Assembly: GCA_029953675.1 (NCBI GenBank)
Contig: JAMWBK010000005.1
Location: forward strand, 1,550,001 to 1,614,000
Direction: 5' to 3'
From: Rhodosorus marinus CCMP1338
Taxonomy: Eukaryota > Plantae > Rhodophyta
Length of the DNA: 64,000 nt
This document shows, piece after piece, positions 36,451 through 59,545 of this stretch (positions are counted from its first letter, which is position 1; each line of letters begins with the position of its first letter). The notes under the pieces are model-generated. The model saw only the letters and a list, made by a program, of their open reading frames with translations, was not told the origin of the DNA and made no database searches. A program made the position numbers and the translations under genes.

Positions 36451-38079
36451 AATGCGGACAATCAATATTTTCCAACTTCTACGTTTGCTTAAAAATAAAC
36501 TTCAGTACATCTCAGATTTACAATCATTTCGGTCTTGATATACCAAAAAAAGAACCAGTCAGAAAGAATCCACCCGTTCGCCAAGAACAGTACCTTTCCT
36601 ATATAGCCCTCGAATTTTTTCTTAGATTTAATCCCCATATGTTCTTATATCATAAATACTCAGCAGCTTACAGCCCACGGCACCCCCCGCCATTCACGTT
36701 CCATCCAAAACTACAGAAAAGAAAATGTACGCGATCCCAGTAAAAACCATCCAAAATCATATTTTTGTTTTACTATTTGAAACTATTCATTCCTCTTCCA
36801 ACCACCTACATATCCACCCTACCCCCTCACCCATTACCCCTTCCTACCAAGCCCACAATGCCATCTCAAAGTCGTTGTTGAAGGACCCAACTCCCCCCCC
36901 CCCTTACCTTCCACCACCTTGGCGAAAACCGGCTTTCGAAGGCGCTTGCGCCAAGGTGTAAGAACCAACTGTGCAATTCTATCCCCACTCCTCTCTGTGG
37001 TCATCTTTGTTTTTTTCCCCAACAATGTCCATACTCCACAGAAATTACATCTTGTTAAAAATTAATCCAAGCAATTTTAAATATCCTAAAACTAACATAA
37101 CAATAATCACATTCCCGCAATATTTATCAGAAAACTTTACTGTCAAACCCTCTCCCTTAAATACCACCTCCGCACCCCTCTGCCGATCAATGTATCAATT
37201 GCACTTGTTTCTAAACACCCTCTTCCTCCCCTCCCCCCTCTTCCCTTTGTCCTTCCCACCATATTCAGAAGCATATCTCAGATCCGGTTGAGAAACCGAA
37301 CGAGAAGTGTGGACTTCTCATCATTTAGTAAAAAAAAACCAACAACCATAGCCAAAAAAGGAAAAACAAATTGACTGAGTAAACCGTAAATTTATTCTTT
37401 ATATTCAATATAATATTCTAAATGATTGATATTTGTCAGGAGAAAGTCCGCGTGTCCCGGGACCGGAATGAGACCTGGGAAATTTTTTTTGGCATTGAGG
37501 AATGAGGAACGGGCGGGGGGGTTGGGGGCGGGGAGGTGGGGGAAGGTGTTAGTCTTCAGGTTTGTACGTGAGGTTGTTAATATATTTGTTCTTTTTTGAG
37601 AGGGTGGCCTACCTATTACCAGATTACCAACAAAATGAATTTTGATTGAGGAGATCGTGAGAATAGCCGTTTATGAACGGAAAAGAAGGACATGGTTTTG
37701 ATTGAATTGGAATTATATTGATGATATGAAAATAAATTTCGTTTAGGGCGATATGGTGAGGGGGGTTCTGGTTTTGTAGGGCAAGTGGGTTTGTGGGCTG
37801 GTGGTAGGAGGCCGCGATGTCAGACATGGGGGCGGATGAGACGATAAAGAGTGTGTAGAGGTTGCGATTGTGGGCGGCTGACAGGCGAGGGAGACAGAGT
37901 GGGTGTGGTGAGGAGGGACTAGGTTTTTCTGTGAAGCGGTGTAGTTGTTACCTAAATGTTTGGGATGGAGGTTTTGAGGTAGAGGAGTGTACGTATGGTC
38001 TTGGGCATTGTTTGAGAGTTGGGTGTGTGGTTGGCTTGAGTGTTTGTTGGGGTTTGGGTTTTCTAGGGGAATATAATTA

Positions 38080-39941
38080 ATGGCGGCGGCAGATGGGATT
38101 TCGCTGAGGATGGCGGATGGTTTTGGGCCTGGCGAGTTGCAGAAGTCGGATTTGGGGTTGAGCACCGAGATGCTGGACCTGTCCACCTCTGCGTTGGATA
38201 TTTCACGGCTTGCTCTTGAGGAGTCGGAAGTGCTTTCACCATCGACGATTACGTTTTCGAACTGTAGGTCTGCTTCGGAGGATGAGGTACCGAGTGAATG
38301 TGCCTCTGAAGACGACAAAGAGTTTTCGGAGCACAATTCTGGCTACTCCGCAGTTGGCTGCAATGAGCCCGGCAAGCTGAAGACGAGAAGAAAATCATCG
38401 AAGACCCTCTCCACGAAATTCATGCGAAAGCTGGGAATGAAATCTTCTTCTTCTTCTCTTGCAACCGCGTGCGGCGTCGACGATGTACGTGACTGAACGA
38501 CGCAGCTGCTATTCTCAACCCAAGCGAACCATCACGAGATCAAGGCTTATCGCAGATTTTACTCCTATCAACGTAGGAAAAGTACAAAGAGCATTTGGAA
38601 GACCAGCACACAGAGATCTGGACGAAGGAGCTCCTCCCCAATTGGAGCAGAAAGCAAAGCTGTTCTAAAGTTCGTTCGTTGTGCTTCAAGGGAATTCCCT
38701 CCCAGATTCGAGGACAGGTATGAATTATCTTGACGTCAACAATTGACAGTGTTTCGTAGTACTGGAACTAACGAACTAGCTGCATTGGACAAATCATAGG
38801 TGTGGTGCTCTTTGCTCGGGAACAAGCTGAACATCACCGCTGACCTGTTTCAAGTACTGTGCGAGCAAGCGGAAAAGTCAAGAGAGGCGTACGAGGAGGA
38901 GAAAGAGCACATCGAAAACGCTGACGGAGATGTTGGTGGTTTTGGTGGGAAGGCAGAGGAACTTCTCCTGAAGGCCATTTCTACCCACAAGATGATTCTC
39001 CTTGATTTGCCGAGGACGTACCCGGAGCTGGAAATTTTCCGCAATGAAAACAGCCCGTATCGGCAGCATCTTCTTGAGGTTCTTGAGGCGTTTGTTTGCT
39101 TCAGGCCCGAGGTACGATTCGACTGTCCGAAATCGTCATGAGGCAAACGGACTCCTTACAAATCGTTGTTAATCATCCCAATTTTTGCAGGTCGGCTATT
39201 CCCAAGGAATGTCCTTTCTTGCGGCGCTCCTGCTTCTTTACATGGAGCCAGCGGACGCGTTCATGGTCTTCACGAACATTTTGACCTCATCTTGCTTTGT
39301 GAATTTCTACAGAATGAAGATGCCCGAGGTAGGCTTACTCTGAGCAGAACTAGGCGCCTGCCACGCGAATTGCGTAGAAATTTGAGCTGATTGTTTAACC
39401 CCTTGTTTTCGCGACGAAACACAGGTAAAGATGTACATGTATGCTCATGAGAAATTTTTGAAGGAGGAGCTTCCCTATCTGTACAGCCACTTCAAGAAGC
39501 TTGGGATCCATCCAGAAATGTACATGGTGAAGTGGATCATGTGCCTGTTCTGCCAGCTGTTGCCATTGGAGTGTACCTGCAGGATATGGGACTTCTTTTT
39601 CCTCGATGGCGACGTCGCAATTTTTCGAACTGGGTTAGGAATTCTCAAGCTTCTTGAGAAGGACCTTCTGAAGATGTAAGTCCAGTTTCATAACTACCCA
39701 AGACGTTGAAGCCAGCGGAACTAACGCCAACGCTCGCCATTTGTAATGGCGACCTCAAAATTGCAGGTCGTTTGAGCAGATCGCTTACCAACTGTCGCAT
39801 CTACCATCTGACATTGACGAGGATGAGCTCATGCGCTCAGTTCGCAGCGTCCAAGTTGTTACGAACAGGAGGCTGAAGGACCTGTTGAAGGAGGCTTCGT
39901 CCGTATATCGAAAACAAGGATCAAAGAATGAGAACCCTTAA
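38080..39941 (+). CDS. TBC-domain Rab GTPase-activating protein (TBC1D12/14-like)
   Basis: ILLDLPRTYP (IxxDxxR arginine finger), YSQGMSFLAALL (YxQ glutamine finger) after splicing, LYSHFKKLGIHPEMYMVKWIMCLF, RIWDFFFLDG. Confidence 0.9.
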
Positions 39942-51047: not shown

Positions 51048-52957
51048 ATGACGCTTTCTCTTCTGACAAATAGCCGACGAGGTGTTTCTCTGTTCCAGAG
51101 TGCCTCAAGATCTCTAAGTAGAACGGTGCAGAAGAATCAGCCGGATCGCGACCCGACAGGAAACGGAGGAATCGGCGGGAGTATGGTCAATGAAGCGGAG
51201 CACTCGCAGACGAATGGCAGAAGAACCGAACAGGTCGAAACAACGCATTTCGGTTTCCAGGATATCCCTGTTAATGAAAAGGTAGCAACTAAGGATCTGC
51301 TCTTTCTTTTCAAGAGAAAAGGACTCTGAGTCTTCCTCGGTTCTACGTCGTGAACTAGTCCGATCGAGTTCGGGGAGTTTTCGCAAACGTGGCGGAGAAC
51401 TATGACCTAATGAACGATCTGAGTACGCCTCAATGAGGGACAATCTATCGATAGATCTGGCAGAATTCTGCTACAACCCTCACCGAGTCGATTTTGTTGT
51501 GTTCCTCTTAGTGTCTGGGGGCATGCACAGAAGGTGGAAGGCCAGTTTTGTGAAATCCCTAGGCGCGACACCAGATATGAAAATAATCGTAAGCAACCAG
51601 AGCTCCAATCTACCACGCTGTCATTTGAGAGACAGGTTTTTGACCTAGTAGATGCCGTTCGCTGACCTTCCAGGACGTAGCAGGTGGAACTGGTGATATC
51701 TCGTTCCGAATTTTGGACGATATAAAGCAAATCGGTGCTTTGGAATCTCCCATAAAGGTGAGCATGGAACCCCTTCTTCCCGGCATCCAATATTTCAAGG
51801 CTTAAGAACGGCTGGTTACACCCTCCTACTTCTCCGTTTTCTTCTACACAAAAACCTCCTCAACAAATGGAAAGGTTCTTGACCCATCCGTGCCTATGCT
51901 TGAAGTTGGGAGAAGAAGAGCGAGCGAATTGAGTAAGGCGCAGTTGCCCTCCATCCCGACGCCTGTGGCTTTCCACAAGTGTTGCTCAAACAAGCTGGTT
52001 TTTACCTTCTCCACCCAACAGATTACGCAGGGCAGGTCGAGTTCGAAATCGATGATGCTGAAGAACTGTCTACTGTTGCGGATGACTCGGTGGTATGCCG
52101 TTACTCCCTTGTATCCACCAAAGGCTTTTCCAAAACCCTCTTTATCAATCCTCCGGATCTTGACATCCACTAGTGTCCTTGAGGCTCACAACACTATGGG
52201 CGAGCAAACGTGGCGTGATCAACATGGTACAATACAAGGAGCACCACGGCTAAAAGACCACCTCGTCCTCCTTCTGCCTTCCTCTTAGGACGCTTATTTA
52301 ATCTCATTCGGTATGAGGAATGTAACAAACCCTGCGAAAGCTCTTCAGCAGGTACGTACCACGAAACCACTACTGAAGGGGAACAGCACCGGTGCTACAA
52401 TGAGGATGTCGCATACCAAGTCTGACAAATTCGAGGATCAGTTTTGGTACGATGCCCCTGACTGTTTTGTATCTTTTCGGGTCCACTTTTCATTGCCTTG
52501 CAGGCGCTTCGAGTGCTTAGACGCGGTGGGCGATTCATGATGTTGGAGTTTGCTAAAGTTGATAATCGTAAGCACGCTTCCCGAGCGCTCAGCACACTGC
52601 ATCGCAGGTGCACTGCTTATCGATTGTTTCTGCTTTGGTTCGCGTTTTTAGCTATCGGCGAGCAACTGTATGACGCTTACTCCGTTAACTTGATTCCTAG
52701 CATGGGAGAGGCTGTTACCGGTGATCGGGCTTCCTATACCTACCTTGTCGAAAGCATTAGGAGGTTCCCTGGGCAGGAGGTGAGTTTTAAGCCATCCTCT
52801 TCATGAGGTTGCGCTGTAAGGGCTAAACCGGAGGGATTCTTGCTGGACATCTTCGTAGGAGTTTGGTGCGATGATGGAAGAAGCAGGTTTTAGAAGCGTC
52901 CAGAAGGAGAATCTTTCGTTCGGAGTCGTTTGTCAGTATTCAGGCTTCAAGCTTTAA
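51048..52957 (+). CDS. COQ5: Mitochondrial 2-methoxy-6-polyprenyl-1,4-benzoquinol methylase (UbiE/COQ5)
   Basis: Presequence, [69 protein letters not shown] stop. Many introns. Confidence 0.92.
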
Positions 52958-53239
52958 CTTGGCTTTGAGTTTTGGCCTTCTAGGGGATGCATTTTCCACG
53001 TCTGTTTGGAAATCGCGTAGCAGCTGTTTCTAGCACCTCCTTGCAAACGAGCCAACTCAAGCTAATTCACAGGAACTATGTCTCAGCACGCCGAGTCTCA
53101 GCACGCCGACCGTTGGAGCTCGCACTCCAGCTAGTTCAAAAACTCGTCACCGAACGCAAGCTGCCGGGAACAGATCGTTAGGAAACATCACGTGGACGCG
53201 CATTCGCACGACTTGAAACTAGATTTACATGACTCAGAC

Positions 53240-54973
53240 CTACTGCGTCGCCTTGACAACCGCCTCAAGCCACAAGCTGACGGCGACCGCTCCAGGGTCC
53301 GGAGTACCTATAAGTTTCTCGCTTGGAACGTACGACGACCTGCCCGCTTGGGCCAATGCATTTTGGGCAGTGTCACCCGCCCCTTTCTTCGCCGCGGCAA
53401 CCATCGCCTCTAAAGACGAGGAGTTCCTCGTCGCTGGGTAGAGTGCATCCAACATTGTCCTCATGCCTTCCGTAGCTCCGCCGTATTTCGATATAGCTTC
53501 AGTACCTGCGAGCAGGGCGTCCTGCCATGTTCCTCCGTTTGCGACGCTTGATCCAGCTGCCGTGAAGCCAAGATGGTACAAAACACCCGACGTACCTCCC
53601 ATTGACTGGCCAGCCGATAATCCAATCGCATTCAGAGTGCTCGACAGTGAATCCACAGGGTATCCATCAAGATCCTTTAGAATCCGCTCAGCCCCCTGCT
53701 TGAGTGTTAGCCCGCAGTCTCCGTCTCCCACTATCTTGTCCTGAGCGGTAAGCTCAGGTTCCGCTTGTATGATCACCTCACAAGCGGCCTTGATTCTCTC
53801 CTTCATGGCCATTCCAGCCTCGTCCAGCTGTCCAGGAGCTGCAGCTACGCTCGGAGGAGTAACATCTGGACAGTCTACAACGAATACGTCCGGAGTCAAG
53901 TCTCGGAAAGGAAGCCATGACAAGGCGGAGGATGGAGCCAACAGGTAATTCTCCACCCCACTGAGATTGCATAAGCTTATACTGAACCCGGTCATGTCGA
54001 GGCTCGTCATTGCTGTCATAACGGTGATCTTTGTAACATTTATCCCTGCGCCCTGCAAAGCTCGAACAGAATCTCGGACGACTATATTCATTTCCAGAGG
54101 AGGCAGAGTACCCAAATTGTTGACGAGGAGCGCGTAGCTCGCGGTGGAGTCCTTCAGTGACTCCACGACGTGATCAACGAGTATCTGCGCCGTCTCTTTG
54201 CTGGATTTCACAGGCTCCGTAAATCTCCCGGGTTCTCCATGAATTCCGAGACCGTACTCTGTGAGGTCGCCCGCTAACCTGTTCGACGGTTGGGCGCCTG
54301 GTATTGTACAAGTTGTCAAGGCCATACCCATGGATGCGACTCCCCGGGCCGCTTCACTAAGCGTTTGCAAGATCTGTACGAAAGTTAGAGGCAGGGTAAG
54401 GACCAAGTCCACGACTCAGGCAAAAAGCTATATCAAGTTCTCCAGTACCTGATCTTTAGGCATTCCCTGTTCAGCGGCTGCACCCGCAATCTTGATGATG
54501 AAAAGCGCTCCCGCGATTCCTCTCGGCTGTGGTGCGTCCTTGATTGCTACATCATCCGCTACCATGAAGTAGTCACAGTTGTATCCTTCTCCTTTGGCTT
54601 GCTCAACAGCAACGCCAAAGTTGAGCCTATCTCCAGTGTAGTTTTTTGATATTACGATACATCCCGCAGGTCCAGTCACCGCCTTTACTGCGGCGAGCAC
54701 TGCCTCCGTCGACGGAGAAGCAAAAACATCACCACAGACCGCCGCGCTGAGCATCCCCTTTCCAACCCATCCAGCGTGTGAGGGTTCATGCCCAGATCCC
54801 CCACCACATACAAGCGCGACTTTATCCCTCTTGAAATCCTCATCATTCCTTACCACAACCTTAACTGTATTCTTATACTCCAGCCTCGCTAACTTCCCTC
54901 CAGAACCCAGCAGGACCCCCTCGATCGAGTCCTGTACCAACCGATCCTGATCATTGTACAGCCTCTTCGCCAT
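53240..54973 (-). CDS. DAK1: ATP-dependent dihydroxyacetone kinase/triokinase (fused DhaK-DhaL, about 552 aa)
   Basis: GGGSGHEPSHAGWVGKGML, KNYTGDRLNFG, GIHGEPG, GDGDCG, MGGTSGVLY, RTMLDAL, GRSSY, PDPGA. A single intron 54448-54374 joins the two ORFs in frame. Confidence 0.96.
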
Positions 54974-55424
54974 CGCTCTTTTTCAAAAAGCTCCTAAGTA
55001 ATCTGCCCTCTCGTCACTTCACAACACACCTCCGCTATTCTCCTCTGCCTTATTGACCTCAGGGTCTGTGATCTCCTCAAGACAACCCCCCAAAAAGCTC
55101 AGCACATGTTCCTCAAACCATATACCCCTAAACACAATATGATCTATCCAAATCAATCCGCCAAATGGATACGATACCAGCAAGACATCAATCTGAGATA
55201 TTTCCAAAGTCGATCCATCCACCAATACCAAGCAAACCCTGAAAACAACGAGTTGAGGCAACTTCAAATTTTTTAGTATATAGTAAAAAAGTGTGACTGT
55301 CGAGCTCGTATCACGACCGGACAGGGAGATCATGACTCACATAAGTTCTTTAACTTTTGACCCCAAGCCAGCCAGCAATACTAAAGCCACTTCAAATTTC
55401 TATTATATCTAGCGAAGTGATTAG

Positions 55425-55498
55425 GTCTCGGTAGCTCAGCTGGTTAGAGCGTACGGCTGTTAACCGTAAGGTCGAGAGTTCAATCCTCTCCCGGGACG
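55425..55498 (+). tRNA. trnN: tRNA-Asn (GTT), copy 1
   Basis: Acceptor stem GTCTCGG/CCGGGAC, D-arm AGCTCAGCTGGTTAGAGC, anticodon arm TACGG-CT GTT AA-CCGTA, T-loop GTTCAATC, downstream T-run. Confidence 0.97.
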
Positions 55499-55902
55499 TT
55501 TGTTTTATTTACAATTTTCATGAAAAGGTATACCCTCGAAGTTTTTAAAATATTCCCTTTTTCTCTTCTCGTAAACATCGGAACAAATATCTGCACGTAG
55601 ACAAGAGCCAATATTTCATATTCATTTCAATCTTCTCCGAGCCAAGGACGGAGTTATTACTGCAAGTTCGTGGAAAAAAAAACCGTCGGATTTCCTATTT
55701 CTTAAACTATTCTATTATAATTTTATCATATCATCGAAAAACATTGTAATGGAGTATGGAAGCGCTTTGTTCTTTTCTGAATTCAGTCTCTCGAGTTGTA
55801 CCCGTCGATGTTATAATTTCCTAAAGAAACCACTTGAATATCTAGTTTCTTTCTCATTGATACTACAACATAAATCCTGTTTTTATCACCTCGAGCGGGA
55901 AG

Positions 55903-55976
55903 GTCTCGGTAGCTCAGCTGGTTAGAGCGTACGGCTGTTAACCGTAAGGTCGAGAGTTCAATCCTCTCCCGGGACG
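55903..55976 (+). tRNA. trnN: tRNA-Asn (GTT), copy 2, identical to copy 1
   Basis: 74 nt identical to 55425-55498. Confidence 0.97.
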
Positions 55977-56627
55977 GTGGTTTCCAGCTAACAATTTTTA
56001 TGAGAGAAAAGAACTTAGCTAGTTCCTGAAATCTTTAATCATTGTTTTCTCATATCATCGAAAAAAACAAATCAATAAACTAGCAAATTCTAATTTTTTA
56101 TTGAATTCAAACTATTGTGTTGTACGGGCGAATTTTACGGTTTTCTGAGCAACACCCGAAATATATCGTTTCCATTGAATACTCAATAGATTTATCATAT
56201 TACCAAAAAACTTTCGTCGGCATCTTGTTGAATCCCAAATATTTTATATCGCATTTCAATCATATTCAGATTTCGGTAAGGTCACGATCGTGGATTTCGA
56301 TTGGTTGGTAAAAAAGCTAGTTTCCGAAACATTGGCGAAATTTTGATTATTTTCGGGAACAGGATTTTTTGGGGGGTAGTTTTTTTGGAATTGTTGAAAG
56401 TTTTAGCAAAAAACGGAATTGTTTTTTATCCCACCTAAATCGGATTTTCACGTGAGAAAACAAGCATTGTACTAGGAGGTATCGTATCCTGTCGTATCCT
56501 GTCGGTGGGATTGACGTAGGATGGCTTGAGGGGGTTGAGATGGGGTGGGAGATTGGGAGTATTCTGTCATTAAAAAATGGGGGCGAGGTCGAGGTCGGGT
56601 TGGACGTGAGACACCATCTGGAATTTC

Positions 56628-56634
56628 TATATAA
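56628..56634 (+). promoter_or_regulatory. Putative TATA box of the glycerol dehydrogenase gene
   Basis: TATATAA about 120 nt upstream of ATG 56755, followed by a G/T-rich 5'UTR-like tract; CACGTG (G-box-like) near 56450. Confidence 0.4.
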
Positions 56635-56754
56635 GGAGCTGGGGAAGAACTCTGTTTAGGGGGGTTGGGGGGAAGAGAAGGTAGTGTGTGGTGTGTGTTT
56701 GGGTAGTTGTGGTTGAACGGATTTTTTTGGGGGTGAATATTTGAGCTTGTGGAG

Positions 56755-57903
56755 ATGGCGGAATCTGAAGCGAGGTTTGATCCCTTCAAGGATTATGGTT
56801 CGGTGGAAGCGAAGGTGTACAGCTCGCCGCATAAATATGTGCAAAAGAAAGGTTTGATAAAGGATTTTGGGACTTTCCTGAAGGGCCTTGAGGCAGAGAA
56901 GGCGGGGATTATTGGTGAGAAGTTCCTTCTGGATATACACGGGGAGGCGATCGTCAGTTCATTGAAGGATAAAGCTGGTGTTGACGCACGCATGTTGAAC
57001 TTTGGCGGTGAGAGCTCATGGCAGGAGGTGACGAACATCGTTGAGGATGTGAAGAAGGACTCCATTGATTTCTTGGTTGGGTTTGGAGGTGGTAAGACTA
57101 TTGACACCGCAAAGGCAGCCGGCTATAAGCTTCGAATCCCAGTCGTCATCGCGCCCACACTCGCATCCAATGACGCACCCTGCAGTGCGCTGAGTGTGAT
57201 CTATTCTGCTGAAGGCGAATTTGAGGAGTATTTTTTTTTCCCGGACAACCCTTACATCGTGCTTGTGGACACTGCAGTTGTTGGGACAGCACCTGAGAGG
57301 TTCGTTGTCTCCGGAATGGGGGATGCCATGGCTACCTACTATGAAGCCGACGCTTGCAATCGTGCGCCACACGGTAGGAACATGGTGGGCGGAAGACCCA
57401 CCATGTGCGGATTGGCAATCGGTGTACTATGCAAGGACGTTCTTTATGAGTATGGGCCACAGGCGGCCAAGGACGCTGCAAAGAAAGAGGTAACTGACGC
57501 TGTTGAGAAGATCATCGAGTGCAACACACTTCTCAGCGGACTTGGTTTTGAAAGTGGAGGCTTGGGAGCAGCGCATGCTATTCACAATGGCATGACGATC
57601 ACTCCGAAGACACACCACGCAATCCATGGGGAAAAGGTTGCGTTCGCGCTGGTTGCTCAGCTAGTAATGGAGGACAATAGGGAGGAAGCGCTCAGGGTTT
57701 CAAAATTCAACAAGGAGGTTGGGCTTCCTTATAAGCTAAGTGAACTACATCTCGAAGCATCGGACACCGAAACCCTTGAACTAATTGCCAAGCGCTCCTT
57801 GGAACCTGGAGAGTCGATTTACAACATGCCTTTCACAGTCACACCTCAGATGGTCGTTGACGGCATGATCGGTGCGGACGAACTTGGTATCTCACTGGAT
57901 TAA
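56755..57903 (+). CDS. gldA: NAD+-dependent glycerol dehydrogenase (family III metal-dependent polyol dehydrogenase), intronless, 382 aa
   Basis: SSPHKYVQ, GFGGGKTIDTAKA, PTLASNDAPCSALSVIY, metal ligands in SGMGDAMATYYEA, SGLGFESGGLGAAHAIHNG and HGEKVAF. Confidence 0.96.
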   Translation: MAESEARFDPFKDYGSVEAKVYSSPHKYVQKKGLIKDFGTFLKGLEAEKAGIIGEKFLLDIHGEAIVSSLKDKAGVDARMLNFGGESSWQEVTNIVEDVKKDSIDFLVGFGGGKTIDTAKAAGYKLRIPVVIAPTLASNDAPCSALSVIYSAEGEFEEYFFFPDNPYIVLVDTAVVGTAPERFVVSGMGDAMATYYEADACNRAPHGRNMVGGRPTMCGLAIGVLCKDVLYEYGPQAAKDAAKKEVTDAVEKIIECNTLLSGLGFESGGLGAAHAIHNGMTITPKTHHAIHGEKVAFALVAQLVMEDNREEALRVSKFNKEVGLPYKLSELHLEASDTETLELIAKRSLEPGESIYNMPFTVTPQMVVDGMIGADELGISLD

Positions 57904-58058
57904 TCGGCCAAAGCTGAAAGCTCTTTCGACGATATCCCTGATCCAGTTTTATATAACCCCACAAGCGATTAGCAGGCTCGTTCGAAGTAAAACACGTCAA
58001 CGCCACGTAGAGGCAGCTGAAACCTCCTGGTTCAAACCCATTTCCACAATGATGGGCT

Positions 58059-59545
58059 TCATATTTGTGTGTCAGAAACGACTTGGATCTTGATGCCTCT
58101 CTTCCGTAGCCGATCTAAGATCGACGTTTTTCTTAGAGCAACAGTCGGCGTGTGTACTCCGAAGGGGATCTTGGATCGTTCTTCAAGAATGCACCTCGCC
58201 GACGCCACCACAGCTGCTGCCGTGAACCGATAAAATGGGTCCTCGGCACCTGCAAACGTTGTGACGACCTTCCTCGTGGGTTTTCCAGACGACTCTGAGG
58301 CCGAGTTCCATCCCTCCGCAACAAATCGCATCTCAAACGTGCTCTTGTCCAGCAGCTCGTCGCTGGGGCCTTCCCTAGAGAAAAATCCGCCGCTGAAAAA
58401 TTCAGGGAACCTCAGCAACAGGTTCACTCCCAACGGAAACCTGCGAACCCAGAATCAGAAATAGATAGAGGAGGGTGAGAACAGAAACTAACAGGGGTTA
58501 GATAGACTGATGCTGCAAGTGCTACAGCCACCTCGCCGAGAAGGCCAATGCCGGAACGGACCAACAATTTAGGTTAGTACAAACCCGGCCCAGTACTAAT
58601 ATACACTAACTAAGGCAGCGGGAGGCAGGTTGTTCACTTCGGCGAGGGGGCGGGAAATGAGCTCTGAGCGATACTTTTCCGCGAAATTTGGACTTACGAC
58701 GTCATAACCGTTAGTAAAATCCCGAACAAGGCAGAGAGCATCACATAAAACCAGCTCCCTACGGTGAAGTAGCACTGAAACTGAACTGGGGTGATCTTGT
58801 CTCGCAAGAAGAGGGTTGCCTGACTTCGTCTGACTACTGACGCATCAGCACCAGGGAAGGGCATCGAGTAGAGCCCGCTGTCCAGCTTGTCTCCGGCTTT
58901 TGTCATCTTCTGCTTTCCTCCTGGATACTCAAGCTTCACTTTCGAAGTGGGAAGTTCCTTCCTAATTGAAGCCAGTTCACCAGAGTTCCTCATGCTATGT
59001 ACAGCAGATTCAAAGGTCGTGAAGTTGGCTTTGGATGCGTTGTGCACGATATGATAGGCGCGGATTAAACTTATAAGCTGAGTTGAAGGAAAGATTGTCG
59101 ACGTGAAGTAAGCGCCGAGATCCGCAGGGATACTGTCAAACCCACAAGAGCCAATCGCGATTAGCTTCTTCTTTTCATATTCCTCAGAAAACTCAACCAC
59201 GGCTCTTTCCAGGAACGCCGGCTCTCCAGAGACGTCCACATAATGTGAATTGGCCAGTAAGCAAGCGCGCATAACCGCCTCCCCATAAAACCGGTACGGC
59301 CCAGTTGCATTGATCACAACATCAGCGCCAGTGAAGGCATTGACCATCGATTCCTCATCAGCAGCGTCTGCAACCACAGCACGCTCCTCAGGAAAACATG
59401 ACTTCAACTTTTCCTCGCTTCTCCCACATACCGCGTAGCTAAGCCTCTTAGCTCCTCTCACCTCCTTCTCATTCTTCAGCTCCTTCACAATAAACTTCCC
59501 AGTGAACCCGGTAGCTCCAAATACAATTATGTTCACTCCCCTCAT
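58059..59545 (-). CDS. SCCPDH: Saccharopine dehydrogenase-like oxidoreductase
   Basis: IIVFGATGFTGKF, CGRSEEKL, VINATGPYRFYGEAVMRAC, HYVDVSGEP, CGFDSIPADLG, C-terminal GVHTPTVAL...LDRLRKRGIKIQV. Confidence 0.9.

Follow-up and report, generated by a model that had tools for sequence, protein, structure and literature searches.

In the 64,000-nucleotide window analysed here (contig JAMWBK010000005.1, assembly GCA_029953675.1, of the red alga Rhodosorus marinus CCMP1338) a dihydroxyacetone kinase gene (DAK, minus strand) and a glycerol dehydrogenase-type gene (gldA, plus strand) lie head-to-head with 1,781 bp between them (54974-56754). An earlier note on this DNA had placed the start codons at 54973 (DAK) and 56755 (gldA). 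These coordinates were borne out, as was the view that the flanking COQ5 and SCCPDH genes are unrelated to the pathway (gene models, Pfam). The features are as follows.

51048-52957, plus strand: COQ5/UbiE methyltransferase gene, convergent with DAK (gene model, Pfam)
53240-54373, minus strand: DAK exon 2, C-terminal part of Dak1 (K), Dak2 (L) and stop (ORF/splice reconstruction, Pfam, transcript L010)
54374-54448, minus strand: DAK intron of 75 nt (GT..AG) with a stop codon in frame (sequence, MMETSP transcript, 552-aa model)
54449-54973, minus strand: DAK exon 1, 175 codons, N-terminal part of Dak1 with the GGGSGHEP motif
54974-55029, minus strand: DAK 5' leader, 56 nt upstream of the ATG, sense strand G/T-rich (L010, GC skew)
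55425-55498, plus strand: tRNA-Asn (GTT), copy 1 (ARAGORN; Rfam RF00005, 68.1 bits)
55903-55976, plus strand: tRNA-Asn (GTT), copy 2, identical to copy 1 (ARAGORN, Rfam)
56628-56636, plus strand: TATA-like box TATATAAGG of putative function, some 125 nt 5' of the gldA start codon (sequence)
56685-56754, plus strand: gldA 5' leader, 69 nt upstream of the ATG, G-rich (L008, alignment starts at 56701)
56755-57903, plus strand: gldA coding sequence, 382 aa, intronless, GldA-type (family III, Zn-dependent) polyol dehydrogenase
58059-59545, minus strand: saccharopine-dehydrogenase-like gene (SCCPDH), convergent with gldA (gene model, Pfam)

Identity of the two enzymes

The DAK frame was read in the window from the ATG at 54973 to 53240 (minus strand, stop included) and is split into two ORFs by a single in-frame GT..AG intron of 75 nt (54448-54374). 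After splicing the protein has 552 aa in agreement with the public gene model. The splice is backed by the MMETSP Rhodosorus transcript L010, which aligned across the junction and in which the intron is missing. Pfam detected Dak1 and Dak2 in a single chain; members of this family likewise phosphorylate glyceraldehyde or other ketoses. The motifs GGGSGHEP and GDRLNF, the hemiaminal His in GIHGEPG and the Asp triad DxxxxDxD (DKIVGDGD) are conserved, and the protein aligned end-to-end with the ATP-dependent DAK from Citrobacter freundii (1UN8/1UN9, E = 2e-105). The full-length scores for NCBIfam TIGR02361 (489.7) and PRK14479 (451.6) were below the curated cutoffs of 574.95 and 492, respectively. 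Therefore, the same substrate as that of the characterised DAKs is not guaranteed.

GldA scored 439 bits against the glycerol dehydrogenase model PRK09423 (NCBIfam, cutoff 336), a subfamily-level model and the sole level passed. It remained under the equivalog cutoffs for bifunctional propanediol/glycerol dehydrogenase and for glycolaldehyde reductase, the latter being the second-best model. Solved glycerol dehydrogenases aligned end-to-end (query 20-378 with chain 3-359, E = 3.5e-95) and the Schizosaccharomyces pombe structure 1TA9 matched with E = 7e-74. The NAD motif GGGKTID and the Zn-ligand contexts GDAMAT, AAHAIHN and HGEKVA are conserved. By Pfam, PRK09423 and structure alignments the assignment of the genes as GldA and DAK, which had been made from the letters, was confirmed. 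GldA has no more than a short N-terminal extension, 19 aa long and acidic. In alignments DAK starts without an extension, unlike the DAKs of Porphyridiophyceae in which transit-peptide-like extensions are present. Probably, neither protein carries a targeting sequence and both are cytosolic. GC3 is 0.55 in gldA and DAK, like in the neighbours; judged by this and by the spliceosomal intron in DAK, both are native nuclear genes. MMETSP Rhodosorus transcripts cover both, i.e. a sister strain expresses gldA and DAK.

Spacer, leaders and promoters

The spacer as a whole has a GC content of 40% and its core one of 36.6%, compared with about 50-54% in the genes. Two genes and no more can be recognised in it, both tRNA-Asn (GTT) of the same sequence on the plus strand. 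The earlier description as AT-rich, with two tRNA genes and nothing else recognisable, therefore stands (ARAGORN, Rfam, GC). Copy 2 belongs to a tandem duplication, roughly 478 bp long, that has since diverged (repeat family D1); the flanking repeats D2/D3 are 77-79% identical.

The 5' ends of the assembled transcripts map to about 55029 for DAK and 56685 for gldA, approximately 1.66 kb apart. The leaders are given as far as the assembled transcripts reach, and up to these ends neither contains an upstream ATG. A box similar to the TATA-like element of gldA, GATATAAGG, is located 5' of gldA in a 73%-identical relative (upstream region of L003/L004). The only motif common to both upstream regions was TTTTGGGGGGT. 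As a joint regulatory motif it was rejected; it is a G-rich leader feature generic to gene starts genome-wide. A bidirectional promoter, as considered earlier, is unlikely given the distance of the 5' ends, the TATA-like box of gldA and the two Pol III-transcribed tRNA genes in between. DAK and gldA would thus each have a separate proximal promoter and leader. Between them the tRNA genes may have an insulating effect, an idea drawn from tDNA barrier studies in yeast and mammals.

Conservation of the pairing

The pairing COQ5/DAK is kept in three other lineages of the Rhodosorus group, the pairing gldA/SCCPDH in two (MMETSP strain A and a Logan relative). In these relatives coding DNA is about 66-72% identical. 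With the contigs available, the DAK-gldA junction is known from the present assembly alone. Because the outer flanks are kept in diverged relatives the junction may be old. This is compatible with a long-maintained block, which would favour selection over accident.

Beyond this group the adjacency is missing in Porphyridium and Galdieria. No GldA is encoded near the Porphyridium DAK, and four gldA genes of Galdieria, at three loci, have no DAK within 10 kb. In Galdieria sulphuraria a glycerol kinase gene follows one gldA in tandem, 119 bp downstream; other Galdieria copies form a gldA/Zn-ADH/gldA trio near a gene of the acetate-permease family. In line with the note, we found no earlier account of a DAK-gldA adjacency in algae in the searchable literature. 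The GldA/DAK pathway is already known from bacteria and fission yeast.

Function and origin of the pair

The coherent two-step route from GldA to DAK proposed earlier is sound; bacteria with the dha system are established to use it, and so is S. pombe with gld1/dak. In S. pombe, gld1+ codes for a GldA-homologous NAD-dependent glycerol dehydrogenase that the yeast needs to assimilate glycerol via DHA, and DAK (dak1+, dak2+) catalyses the next step, the same order of reactions as proposed here. The yeast function is genetically demonstrated whereas that in R. marinus is predicted from sequence. To our knowledge, going by their systematic names, these genes do not lie next to each other in S. pombe. 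The Galdieria gldA loci belong to the same broad clade, and one G. sulphuraria copy is likewise linked to a glycerol-pathway gene; there, however, gldA is paired in tandem with glycerol kinase, which belongs to the other route of entry, and not head-to-head with DAK. An algal precedent for glycerol dissimilation through DHA and DHA kinase is the Dunaliella-type glycerol cycle (PMC12296084). It is tied to glycerol as the principal osmolyte, unlike the R. marinus case. As far as we know the Dunaliella-type enzyme depends on NADP and is not homologous to GldA, and we know of no gene linkage reported for this cycle. Eukaryotic microbes also have small gene clusters for primary metabolism, for example those for nitrate assimilation in green algae and fungi and the GAL and DAL clusters of yeast. 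There, non-homologous genes whose products act one after the other in the use of a nutrient adjoin, sometimes divergently, as here. Those clusters are backed by demonstrated co-regulation and are themselves kept across species; R. marinus has two genes, joined in one assembly.

We consider it most likely, with a probability of about 0.5, that the two intact and expressed genes encode a sequential DHA branch and that their adjacency is a juxtaposition within the Rhodosorus lineage, neither operon relic nor consequence of a shared promoter. The NAD-linked, Zn-dependent GldA would oxidise glycerol to DHA, the single-chain DAK would phosphorylate DHA with ATP, and DHAP would enter glycolysis or gluconeogenesis. 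The probable role would be salvage of glycerol freed by lipid or heteroside turnover, and the head-to-head arrangement may have arisen by genome rearrangement from genes with separate histories. Substrate, direction of flux, compartment and the regulatory effect of the adjacency are what we infer; the last of these we judge likelier to be neutral, or of slight benefit, than the mark of a selected cluster.

Possibly, although we doubt it, the adjacency is fortuitous and the enzymes are not sequential. GldA would then be a reductase or detoxifier, acting on DHA, hydroxyacetone, glycolaldehyde or methylglyoxal-derived carbonyls, or an enzyme for other polyols. Independently, DAK would clear free DHA or glyceraldehyde like a triokinase, or phosphorylate another ketose. 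For E. coli GldA a physiological role in DHA reduction has been proposed, and yeast Dak enzymes detoxify DHA. That neither protein reaches an equivalog-level cutoff, that glycolaldehyde reductase ranks second for GldA, that the promoters are independent and that the pairing is not kept outside the lineage would all fit. In addition, the Galdieria GldA paralogue Gasu_57960 is associated with light and phototrophy and strongly repressed in heterotrophy (log2FC -9.26); an oxidative-stress role was proposed by the authors of that study. Therefore, red-algal GldAs cannot be assumed to be glycerol-assimilation enzymes. On the other hand, S. pombe runs the sequential route in a eukaryote with a GldA homologue, and the R. 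marinus proteins have kept every residue needed to oxidise polyols and to bind DHA. Since DHA is common to both enzymes even if the adjacency is fortuitous, a functional connection is still likely.

The earlier note had favoured a selected, co-regulated two-gene catabolic cluster for recycling of glycerol from floridoside or for growth on external glycerol, in which linkage limits reactive DHA. Adjacency, identities and layout agree with it; the separate promoters and the missing pairing in Porphyridium and at the three Galdieria loci do not, and we regard it as unlikely. In its favour are the conservation of both outer flanks of the four-gene block at this divergence, G. sulphuraria as a second red alga linking gldA to a glycerol-pathway gene, the apparently cytosolic location of both enzymes as opposed to the extended DAKs of Porphyridiophyceae, and the frequent linkage of gldA and DAK in bacteria. 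The probability that two named single-copy genes are immediate neighbours among 8,392 genes is about 2.4e-4. However, when between a few hundred and one thousand pairs of consecutive enzymes are considered, chance would give 0.05-0.24 such adjacencies per genome, or one per few genomes, and adjacency alone is therefore weak evidence in a genome-wide scan. Further points against selection are the single assembly with the junction, 5' ends about 1.66 kb apart with two tRNA genes in between and the generic nature of the shared motif. The floridoside rationale is weakened: the accessible literature does not document this compound in Rhodosorus, where the main polyol reported is sorbitol, and the report of glycerol derives from a hot acid hydrolysate. 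The DAK-gldA adjacency is real and the proposal partly supported; the pairing may be a lineage-specific accident and not a co-regulated cluster.

The bacterial dha system of C. freundii and Klebsiella (gldA/dhaD and dhaK) uses the same two families for the same conversion of glycerol via DHA to DHAP, and physical linkage of the two genes, seen also in R. marinus, is common there (7 of 21 sampled bacterial loci have gldA linked to DAK/DhaK). Yet the bacterial genes are co-directional, 6-12 bp apart and operonic, whereas the R. marinus genes are divergent, 1.78 kb apart, and have separate promoters, tRNA genes between them and a spliceosomal intron in one gene. GldA groups with Galdieria (49-51% identity), Cyanophora, Chromera and a small number of prokaryotes with 96% bootstrap, and not with the Firmicutes that were sampled; DAK groups with Porphyridium and Timspurckia (100%). 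That the pair goes back to one horizontal transfer of a gldA-dhaK operon, followed by an inversion, is very improbable and already largely refuted: both families are patchy among eukaryotes with bacterial best non-algal matches and gldA is commonly followed directly by DAK/DhaK in bacteria, but the clades differ, the Porphyridium/Timspurckia DAK is unlinked to any GldA, the nearest bacteria are of Firmicutes/Halanaerobiales type for GldA and Alphaproteobacteria for DAK (45-47% identity), and intron and GC3 are native. Given such different affinities, the source of the linkage is not a bacterial dha operon passed on by transfer. DAKs tied to gldA operons in bacteria share just 31-41% identity with R. 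marinus DAK and are more distant than unlinked ones.

Gene pair, spacer and neighbours

The unicellular red alga Rhodosorus marinus (Stylonematophyceae) has a nuclear genome of 31.2 Mb with 8,392 genes. The dihydroxyacetone kinase gene (DAK) on the minus strand and the glycerol dehydrogenase gene (gldA) on the plus strand are immediately adjacent, non-homologous members of one pathway, with no protein-coding gene between them. Each feature listed by the earlier note was recovered in its place, including the head-to-head layout. The elements of the locus are as follows.

54973 (ATG) to 53240 (stop), minus strand: DAK, 552 aa after splicing
54448-54374, minus strand: DAK intron, 75 nt, GT..AG, splitting the DAK reading frame
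55425-55498: tRNA-Asn(GTT), first copy, ARAGORN and Rfam in agreement
55903-55976: tRNA-Asn(GTT), second copy, identical to the first, ARAGORN and Rfam in agreement
56628-56636: TATA-like box upstream of gldA
56755-57903, plus strand: gldA, 382 aa, intronless

The DAK splice junction is spanned by an aligned MMETSP Rhodosorus transcript. The spliced product is the public gene model KAJ8904945.1 (NDN08_001458), a 'hypothetical protein' in GenBank but a dihydroxyacetone kinase in the UniRef record of identical sequence. The spacer measures 1,781 bp and has a GC content of 40%, compared with 51% and 54% in the coding regions of gldA and DAK, respectively. As the earlier note had it, two tRNA genes are its only genes (ARAGORN, Rfam). 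Both are part of a tandem duplication (about 478 bp) whose copies have diverged. Between 55423 and 56069 the flanks of the tRNAs (repeat families D1-D3; spacing 478 and 324 nt) are 77-79% alike whereas the tRNAs are identical, which indicates an old tandem duplication in which the tRNA sequence was kept constant.

The neighbours were also named correctly: COQ5/UbiE lies beside DAK and an SCCPDH-like oxidoreductase beside gldA, both convergent. The convergent gaps amount to about 280 bp for COQ5/DAK (52857-53240) and about 155 bp for gldA/SCCPDH (57903-58059). MMETSP transcript contigs (loci L008-L013 and L019) fuse DAK with COQ5 and gldA with SCCPDH; therefore, the 3' ends of the convergent neighbours overlap or abut. 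Further glycerol-related genes were absent among the called genes within 10 kb and among window ORFs of at least 170 aa, a search which short exons would escape.

Transcripts of DAK and gldA are present together in one MMETSP Rhodosorus sample, from a strain which is about 90% identical. GC3 is 0.55 in DAK and gldA, equal to that of their neighbours. A contamination or a foreign island was ruled out by the 3.19-Mb contig, the spliceosomal intron, the native GC3 and the eukaryotic neighbours. DAK and gldA are native genes, neither contamination nor recently transferred.

Enzyme families, compartment and pathway

DAK was compared with the family of ATP-dependent single-chain dihydroxyacetone (glycerone) kinases (TIGR02361, dak_ATP). 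The match was end-to-end (3-547 against 1-582 of 583). The Pfam domains Dak1 (195.9 and 125.3 bits in the two exon ORFs) and Dak2 (114.6 bits) are fused in one polypeptide, and the protein aligns over its entire length with the ATP-dependent DAK of Citrobacter freundii (E = 2e-105). GGGSGHEP at 57, YTGDRLNF (Asp of GDRLNF at 114), GIHGEPG at 218 and DKIVGDGD at 387 align with the motifs of 1UN9. Thus, the hemiaminal His which binds dihydroxyacetone (DHA), the catalytic Asp of the K-domain and the Mg/ATP-binding Asp triad of the L-domain are retained. The full-length scores fell short of the curated NCBIfam cutoffs (489.7 versus 574.95 for TIGR02361; 451.6 versus 492 for PRK14479), and DAK was therefore assigned at the level of the family and not of the equivalog. 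Because these models are tuned for prokaryotic annotation, the low scores make the exact specificity less certain and leave the certainty of fold and family unaffected. Taken together, the evidence supports naming the protein as a member of the ATP-dependent dihydroxyacetone kinase family.

The second protein was compared with the GldA-type glycerol dehydrogenases, i.e. family III polyol dehydrogenases (NCBIfam PRK09423, CDD cd08550). It scored 439.4 bits with PRK09423 (cutoff 336; residues 22-381 of 384 covered), and the Pfam families Fe-ADH and Fe-ADH_2 exceeded their cutoffs as well. Solved glycerol dehydrogenases of bacteria and the Schizosaccharomyces pombe enzyme 1TA9 align with it from end to end. 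The NAD motif GGGKTID at 111 (GGGxxxD) and the Asp/His/His zinc-ligand contexts GDAMAT at 190, AAHAIHN at 273 and HGEKVA at 291 align with identical motifs of the solved glycerol dehydrogenases 6CSJ and 8K1G. Two equivalog models gave scores below their cutoffs, NF047954 for the bifunctional 1,2-propanediol/glycerol dehydrogenase (363.7 versus 700) and NF053832 for glycolaldehyde reductase (383.4 versus 550). The protein is thus assigned as a GldA-type enzyme at the subfamily level. As no equivalog cutoff was reached, it may prefer glycerol or another polyol or carbonyl.

A targeting-type N-terminal extension is absent from both DAK and GldA. For this reason both are predicted to be cytosolic, which is the probable location. 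The DAKs of the Porphyridiophyceae Porphyridium purpureum (protein P0124, locus L005:10001-11860) and Timspurckia (P0123) are extended at the N-terminus by about 45-60 aa with AFI or AAFVP motifs, which are typical of plastid transit peptides of red algae. The DAKs of the Rhodosorus group (550-552 aa) begin right at the conserved domain. This suggests that the compartment of DAK may differ between the Porphyridiophyceae and the Rhodosorus group.

GldA and DAK would catalyze two consecutive steps, from glycerol to DHA and from DHA to dihydroxyacetone phosphate. We consider this the most likely function of the pair, at a probability of roughly 0.5-0.7 which includes the variant of a cluster. R. 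marinus encodes both types of enzyme that make up a DHA route as found in bacteria and fission yeast. The sequence of GldA followed by DAK is an established route of bacteria and of fission yeast; in the latter, gld1+, a homologue of gldA, is needed for glycerol assimilation. This sequence has also been drawn as a route in the carbon metabolism of Galdieria. One GldA paralogue of Galdieria belongs to the genes with the strongest repression under heterotrophy (log2FC -9.26), and the authors of that study propose a link to oxidative stress. Therefore, a reductive or detoxifying role of GldA is a live alternative to glycerol oxidation.

The earlier note had derived the glycerol from floridoside. 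For R. marinus this rationale is weak: the accessible data comprise a hot acid hydrolysate with sorbitol and glycerol as major components, and this glycerol could stem from lipids or heterosides. Stylonematophyceae have been described to contain mostly digeneaside, sorbitol and floridoside. A search of the accessible literature for glycerol use or floridoside in Rhodosorus yielded no data.

Separate ancestries and linkage in other genomes

The origin of the genes was examined with distance-based neighbour-joining trees of limited eukaryotic sampling. The GldAs of the Rhodosorus group clustered at 100% support. A wider clade (96%) comprised the Rhodosorus group, Galdieria, Cyanophora, Chromera and a few prokaryotic sequences, with the sampled Firmicutes outside. 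Two proteins, P0004 and P0055, had been candidates for further eukaryotic contexts by length and tree position; they were discarded as their neighbourhoods are plainly bacterial. With P0055 being bacterial, the 96% clade is therefore not purely eukaryotic. DAK formed a clade at 100% with Porphyridium and Timspurckia; the outgroups closest to it were Alphaproteobacteria at 45-47% identity.

Bacterial-grade metagenome contigs were reused as a background for linkage. DAK or DhaK/DhaL starts 6-12 bp after gldA in one third of these loci (7/21; L022, L023, L025, L026, L027, L033 and L036). Additional DhaK copies are located upstream in L022 and L023. The bacterial DAKs linked to gldA are 31-41% identical to the algal DAK, i.e. 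they are more distant than unlinked ones. A horizontally acquired bacterial dha operon was rejected because DAK and gldA have different nearest relatives among bacteria and different sister groups among eukaryotes; it is contradicted also by the divergent layout, the DAK intron, the native GC3 and the distance of the operon-linked DAKs. The differing affinities and the low identity of the linked bacterial DAKs argue for separate gene histories and for a linkage which arose in the algal lineage and was not inherited from a dha operon.

Synteny was among the checks which the earlier note had put forward. The pairing is absent from the examined red algae outside the Rhodosorus group: no GldA is encoded within 10 kb of the Porphyridium purpureum DAK (56% identical), and no DAK within 10 kb of the gldA loci of Galdieria sulphuraria and G. 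partita. Within the Rhodosorus group the evidence is indirect, as only the outer pairs are seen in relatives. COQ5 is convergent with DAK in two MMETSP Rhodosorus strains, A and B (the latter with 66% DAK identity), and in a relative assembled from Logan; strain A and the Logan relative also have gldA convergent with SCCPDH. Therefore, the four-gene block is conserved at either outer edge. The junction of DAK and gldA itself is seen in this assembly only, the contigs of the relatives stopping short of the spacer. In the Logan data (SRR22824282/90) the gldA contigs (L003/L004) and the DAK contigs (L006/L007) do not overlap and end in simple repeats before the spacer, with no tRNA. A metagenome scan for close genomic relatives returned bacterial-grade matches only, at 55% identity or less.

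Two other arrangements were observed in Galdieria. In G. sulphuraria KB454485.1 (L002:10001-13106) gldA is followed 119 bp downstream by a glycerol kinase on the same strand (GlpK equivalog, 377 and 103 bits in two exon ORFs). At this locus of another red alga, the enzymes with which the two alternative glycerol routes begin are thus encoded side by side. A trio of gldA (minus), a Zn-dependent alcohol dehydrogenase (plus) and gldA (plus) is conserved between G. partita (L015:6042-11336) and G. sulphuraria (L018:5896-11340). It adjoins a gene of the Gpr1/Fun34/YaaH acetate-permease family and looks like a small neighbourhood for utilisation of alcohols and organic acids.

The chance that two named single-copy genes out of 8,392 are direct neighbours is p ~2.4e-4. 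With 200-1,000 equally notable pairs of consecutive enzymes, 0.05-0.24 chance adjacencies are expected per genome, and a pair of this kind is by itself no surprise when many windows are scanned. In the accessible literature we found no report of this linkage in algae. The enzymes and their pathway are already well known; the adjacency is new but minor.

Promoters in the spacer and the proposed co-regulation

The assembled transcript 5' ends are at about 55029 for DAK and 56685 for gldA, approximately 1.66 kb apart, and the two Pol III tRNA genes sit between the promoters. Such 5' ends are approximate and true starts may be somewhat further upstream, yet the TATA-like box of gldA is at 56628; a similar box precedes gldA in a 73%-identical relative. 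The usual definition of a bidirectional promoter asks for start sites within about 1 kb of each other and for no gene between. The DAK-gldA pair does not fit this definition.

A selected, co-regulated cluster for recycling of glycerol from floridoside, the central proposal of the earlier note, is unproven. It is less likely than a lineage-specific juxtaposition of two genes with independent promoters. A more far-reaching version, which we regard as unlikely, would have the junction conserved across the Rhodosorus group or the Stylonematophyceae and a cytosolic glycerol/DHA module newly put together within a eukaryote. A GldA would have moved beside a DAK of different, bacterial-like ancestry; DAK, seemingly targeted to plastids in Porphyridiophyceae, would have lost its presequence in the Rhodosorus lineage; and both genes would be co-induced upon release of glycerol, e.g. 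by osmotic downshift, darkness or lipid turnover. If true, this module and the independent linkage of gldA and glycerol kinase in Galdieria would point to recurrent selection for linked glycerol-catabolic genes in red algae. A conserved and co-regulated pair would be a rare gene cluster of primary metabolism in a red alga, which would owe its origin to relocation of genes and not to transfer of an operon. Such a pair would also provide a handle on glycerol recycling and on the control of reactive DHA in non-floridean red microalgae. The present value is more modest and consists of well-supported annotations, including that of the DAK which GenBank lists as hypothetical.

A candidate for a shared cis-element was the exact 11-mer TTTTGGGGGGT. 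Its two exact copies in 64 kb (0.08 expected) are both in this spacer, about 100 nt upstream of DAK and about 390 nt upstream of gldA, each facing its gene. The window contains 40 G-runs of six or more, and a G-skew of the sense strand marks about 12 putative gene starts. As a pair-specific element TTTTGGGGGGT was therefore dismissed, and we regard it as a generic leader feature. The skew of G over C on the sense strand is strong (|skew| 0.4-0.66) at 54700-55300, at 56300-57100 and at about 12 other sites, e.g. 36500-38300. At about 37400 its sign flips abruptly, which suggests a compact divergent promoter at this site, unlike the spacer between DAK and gldA.
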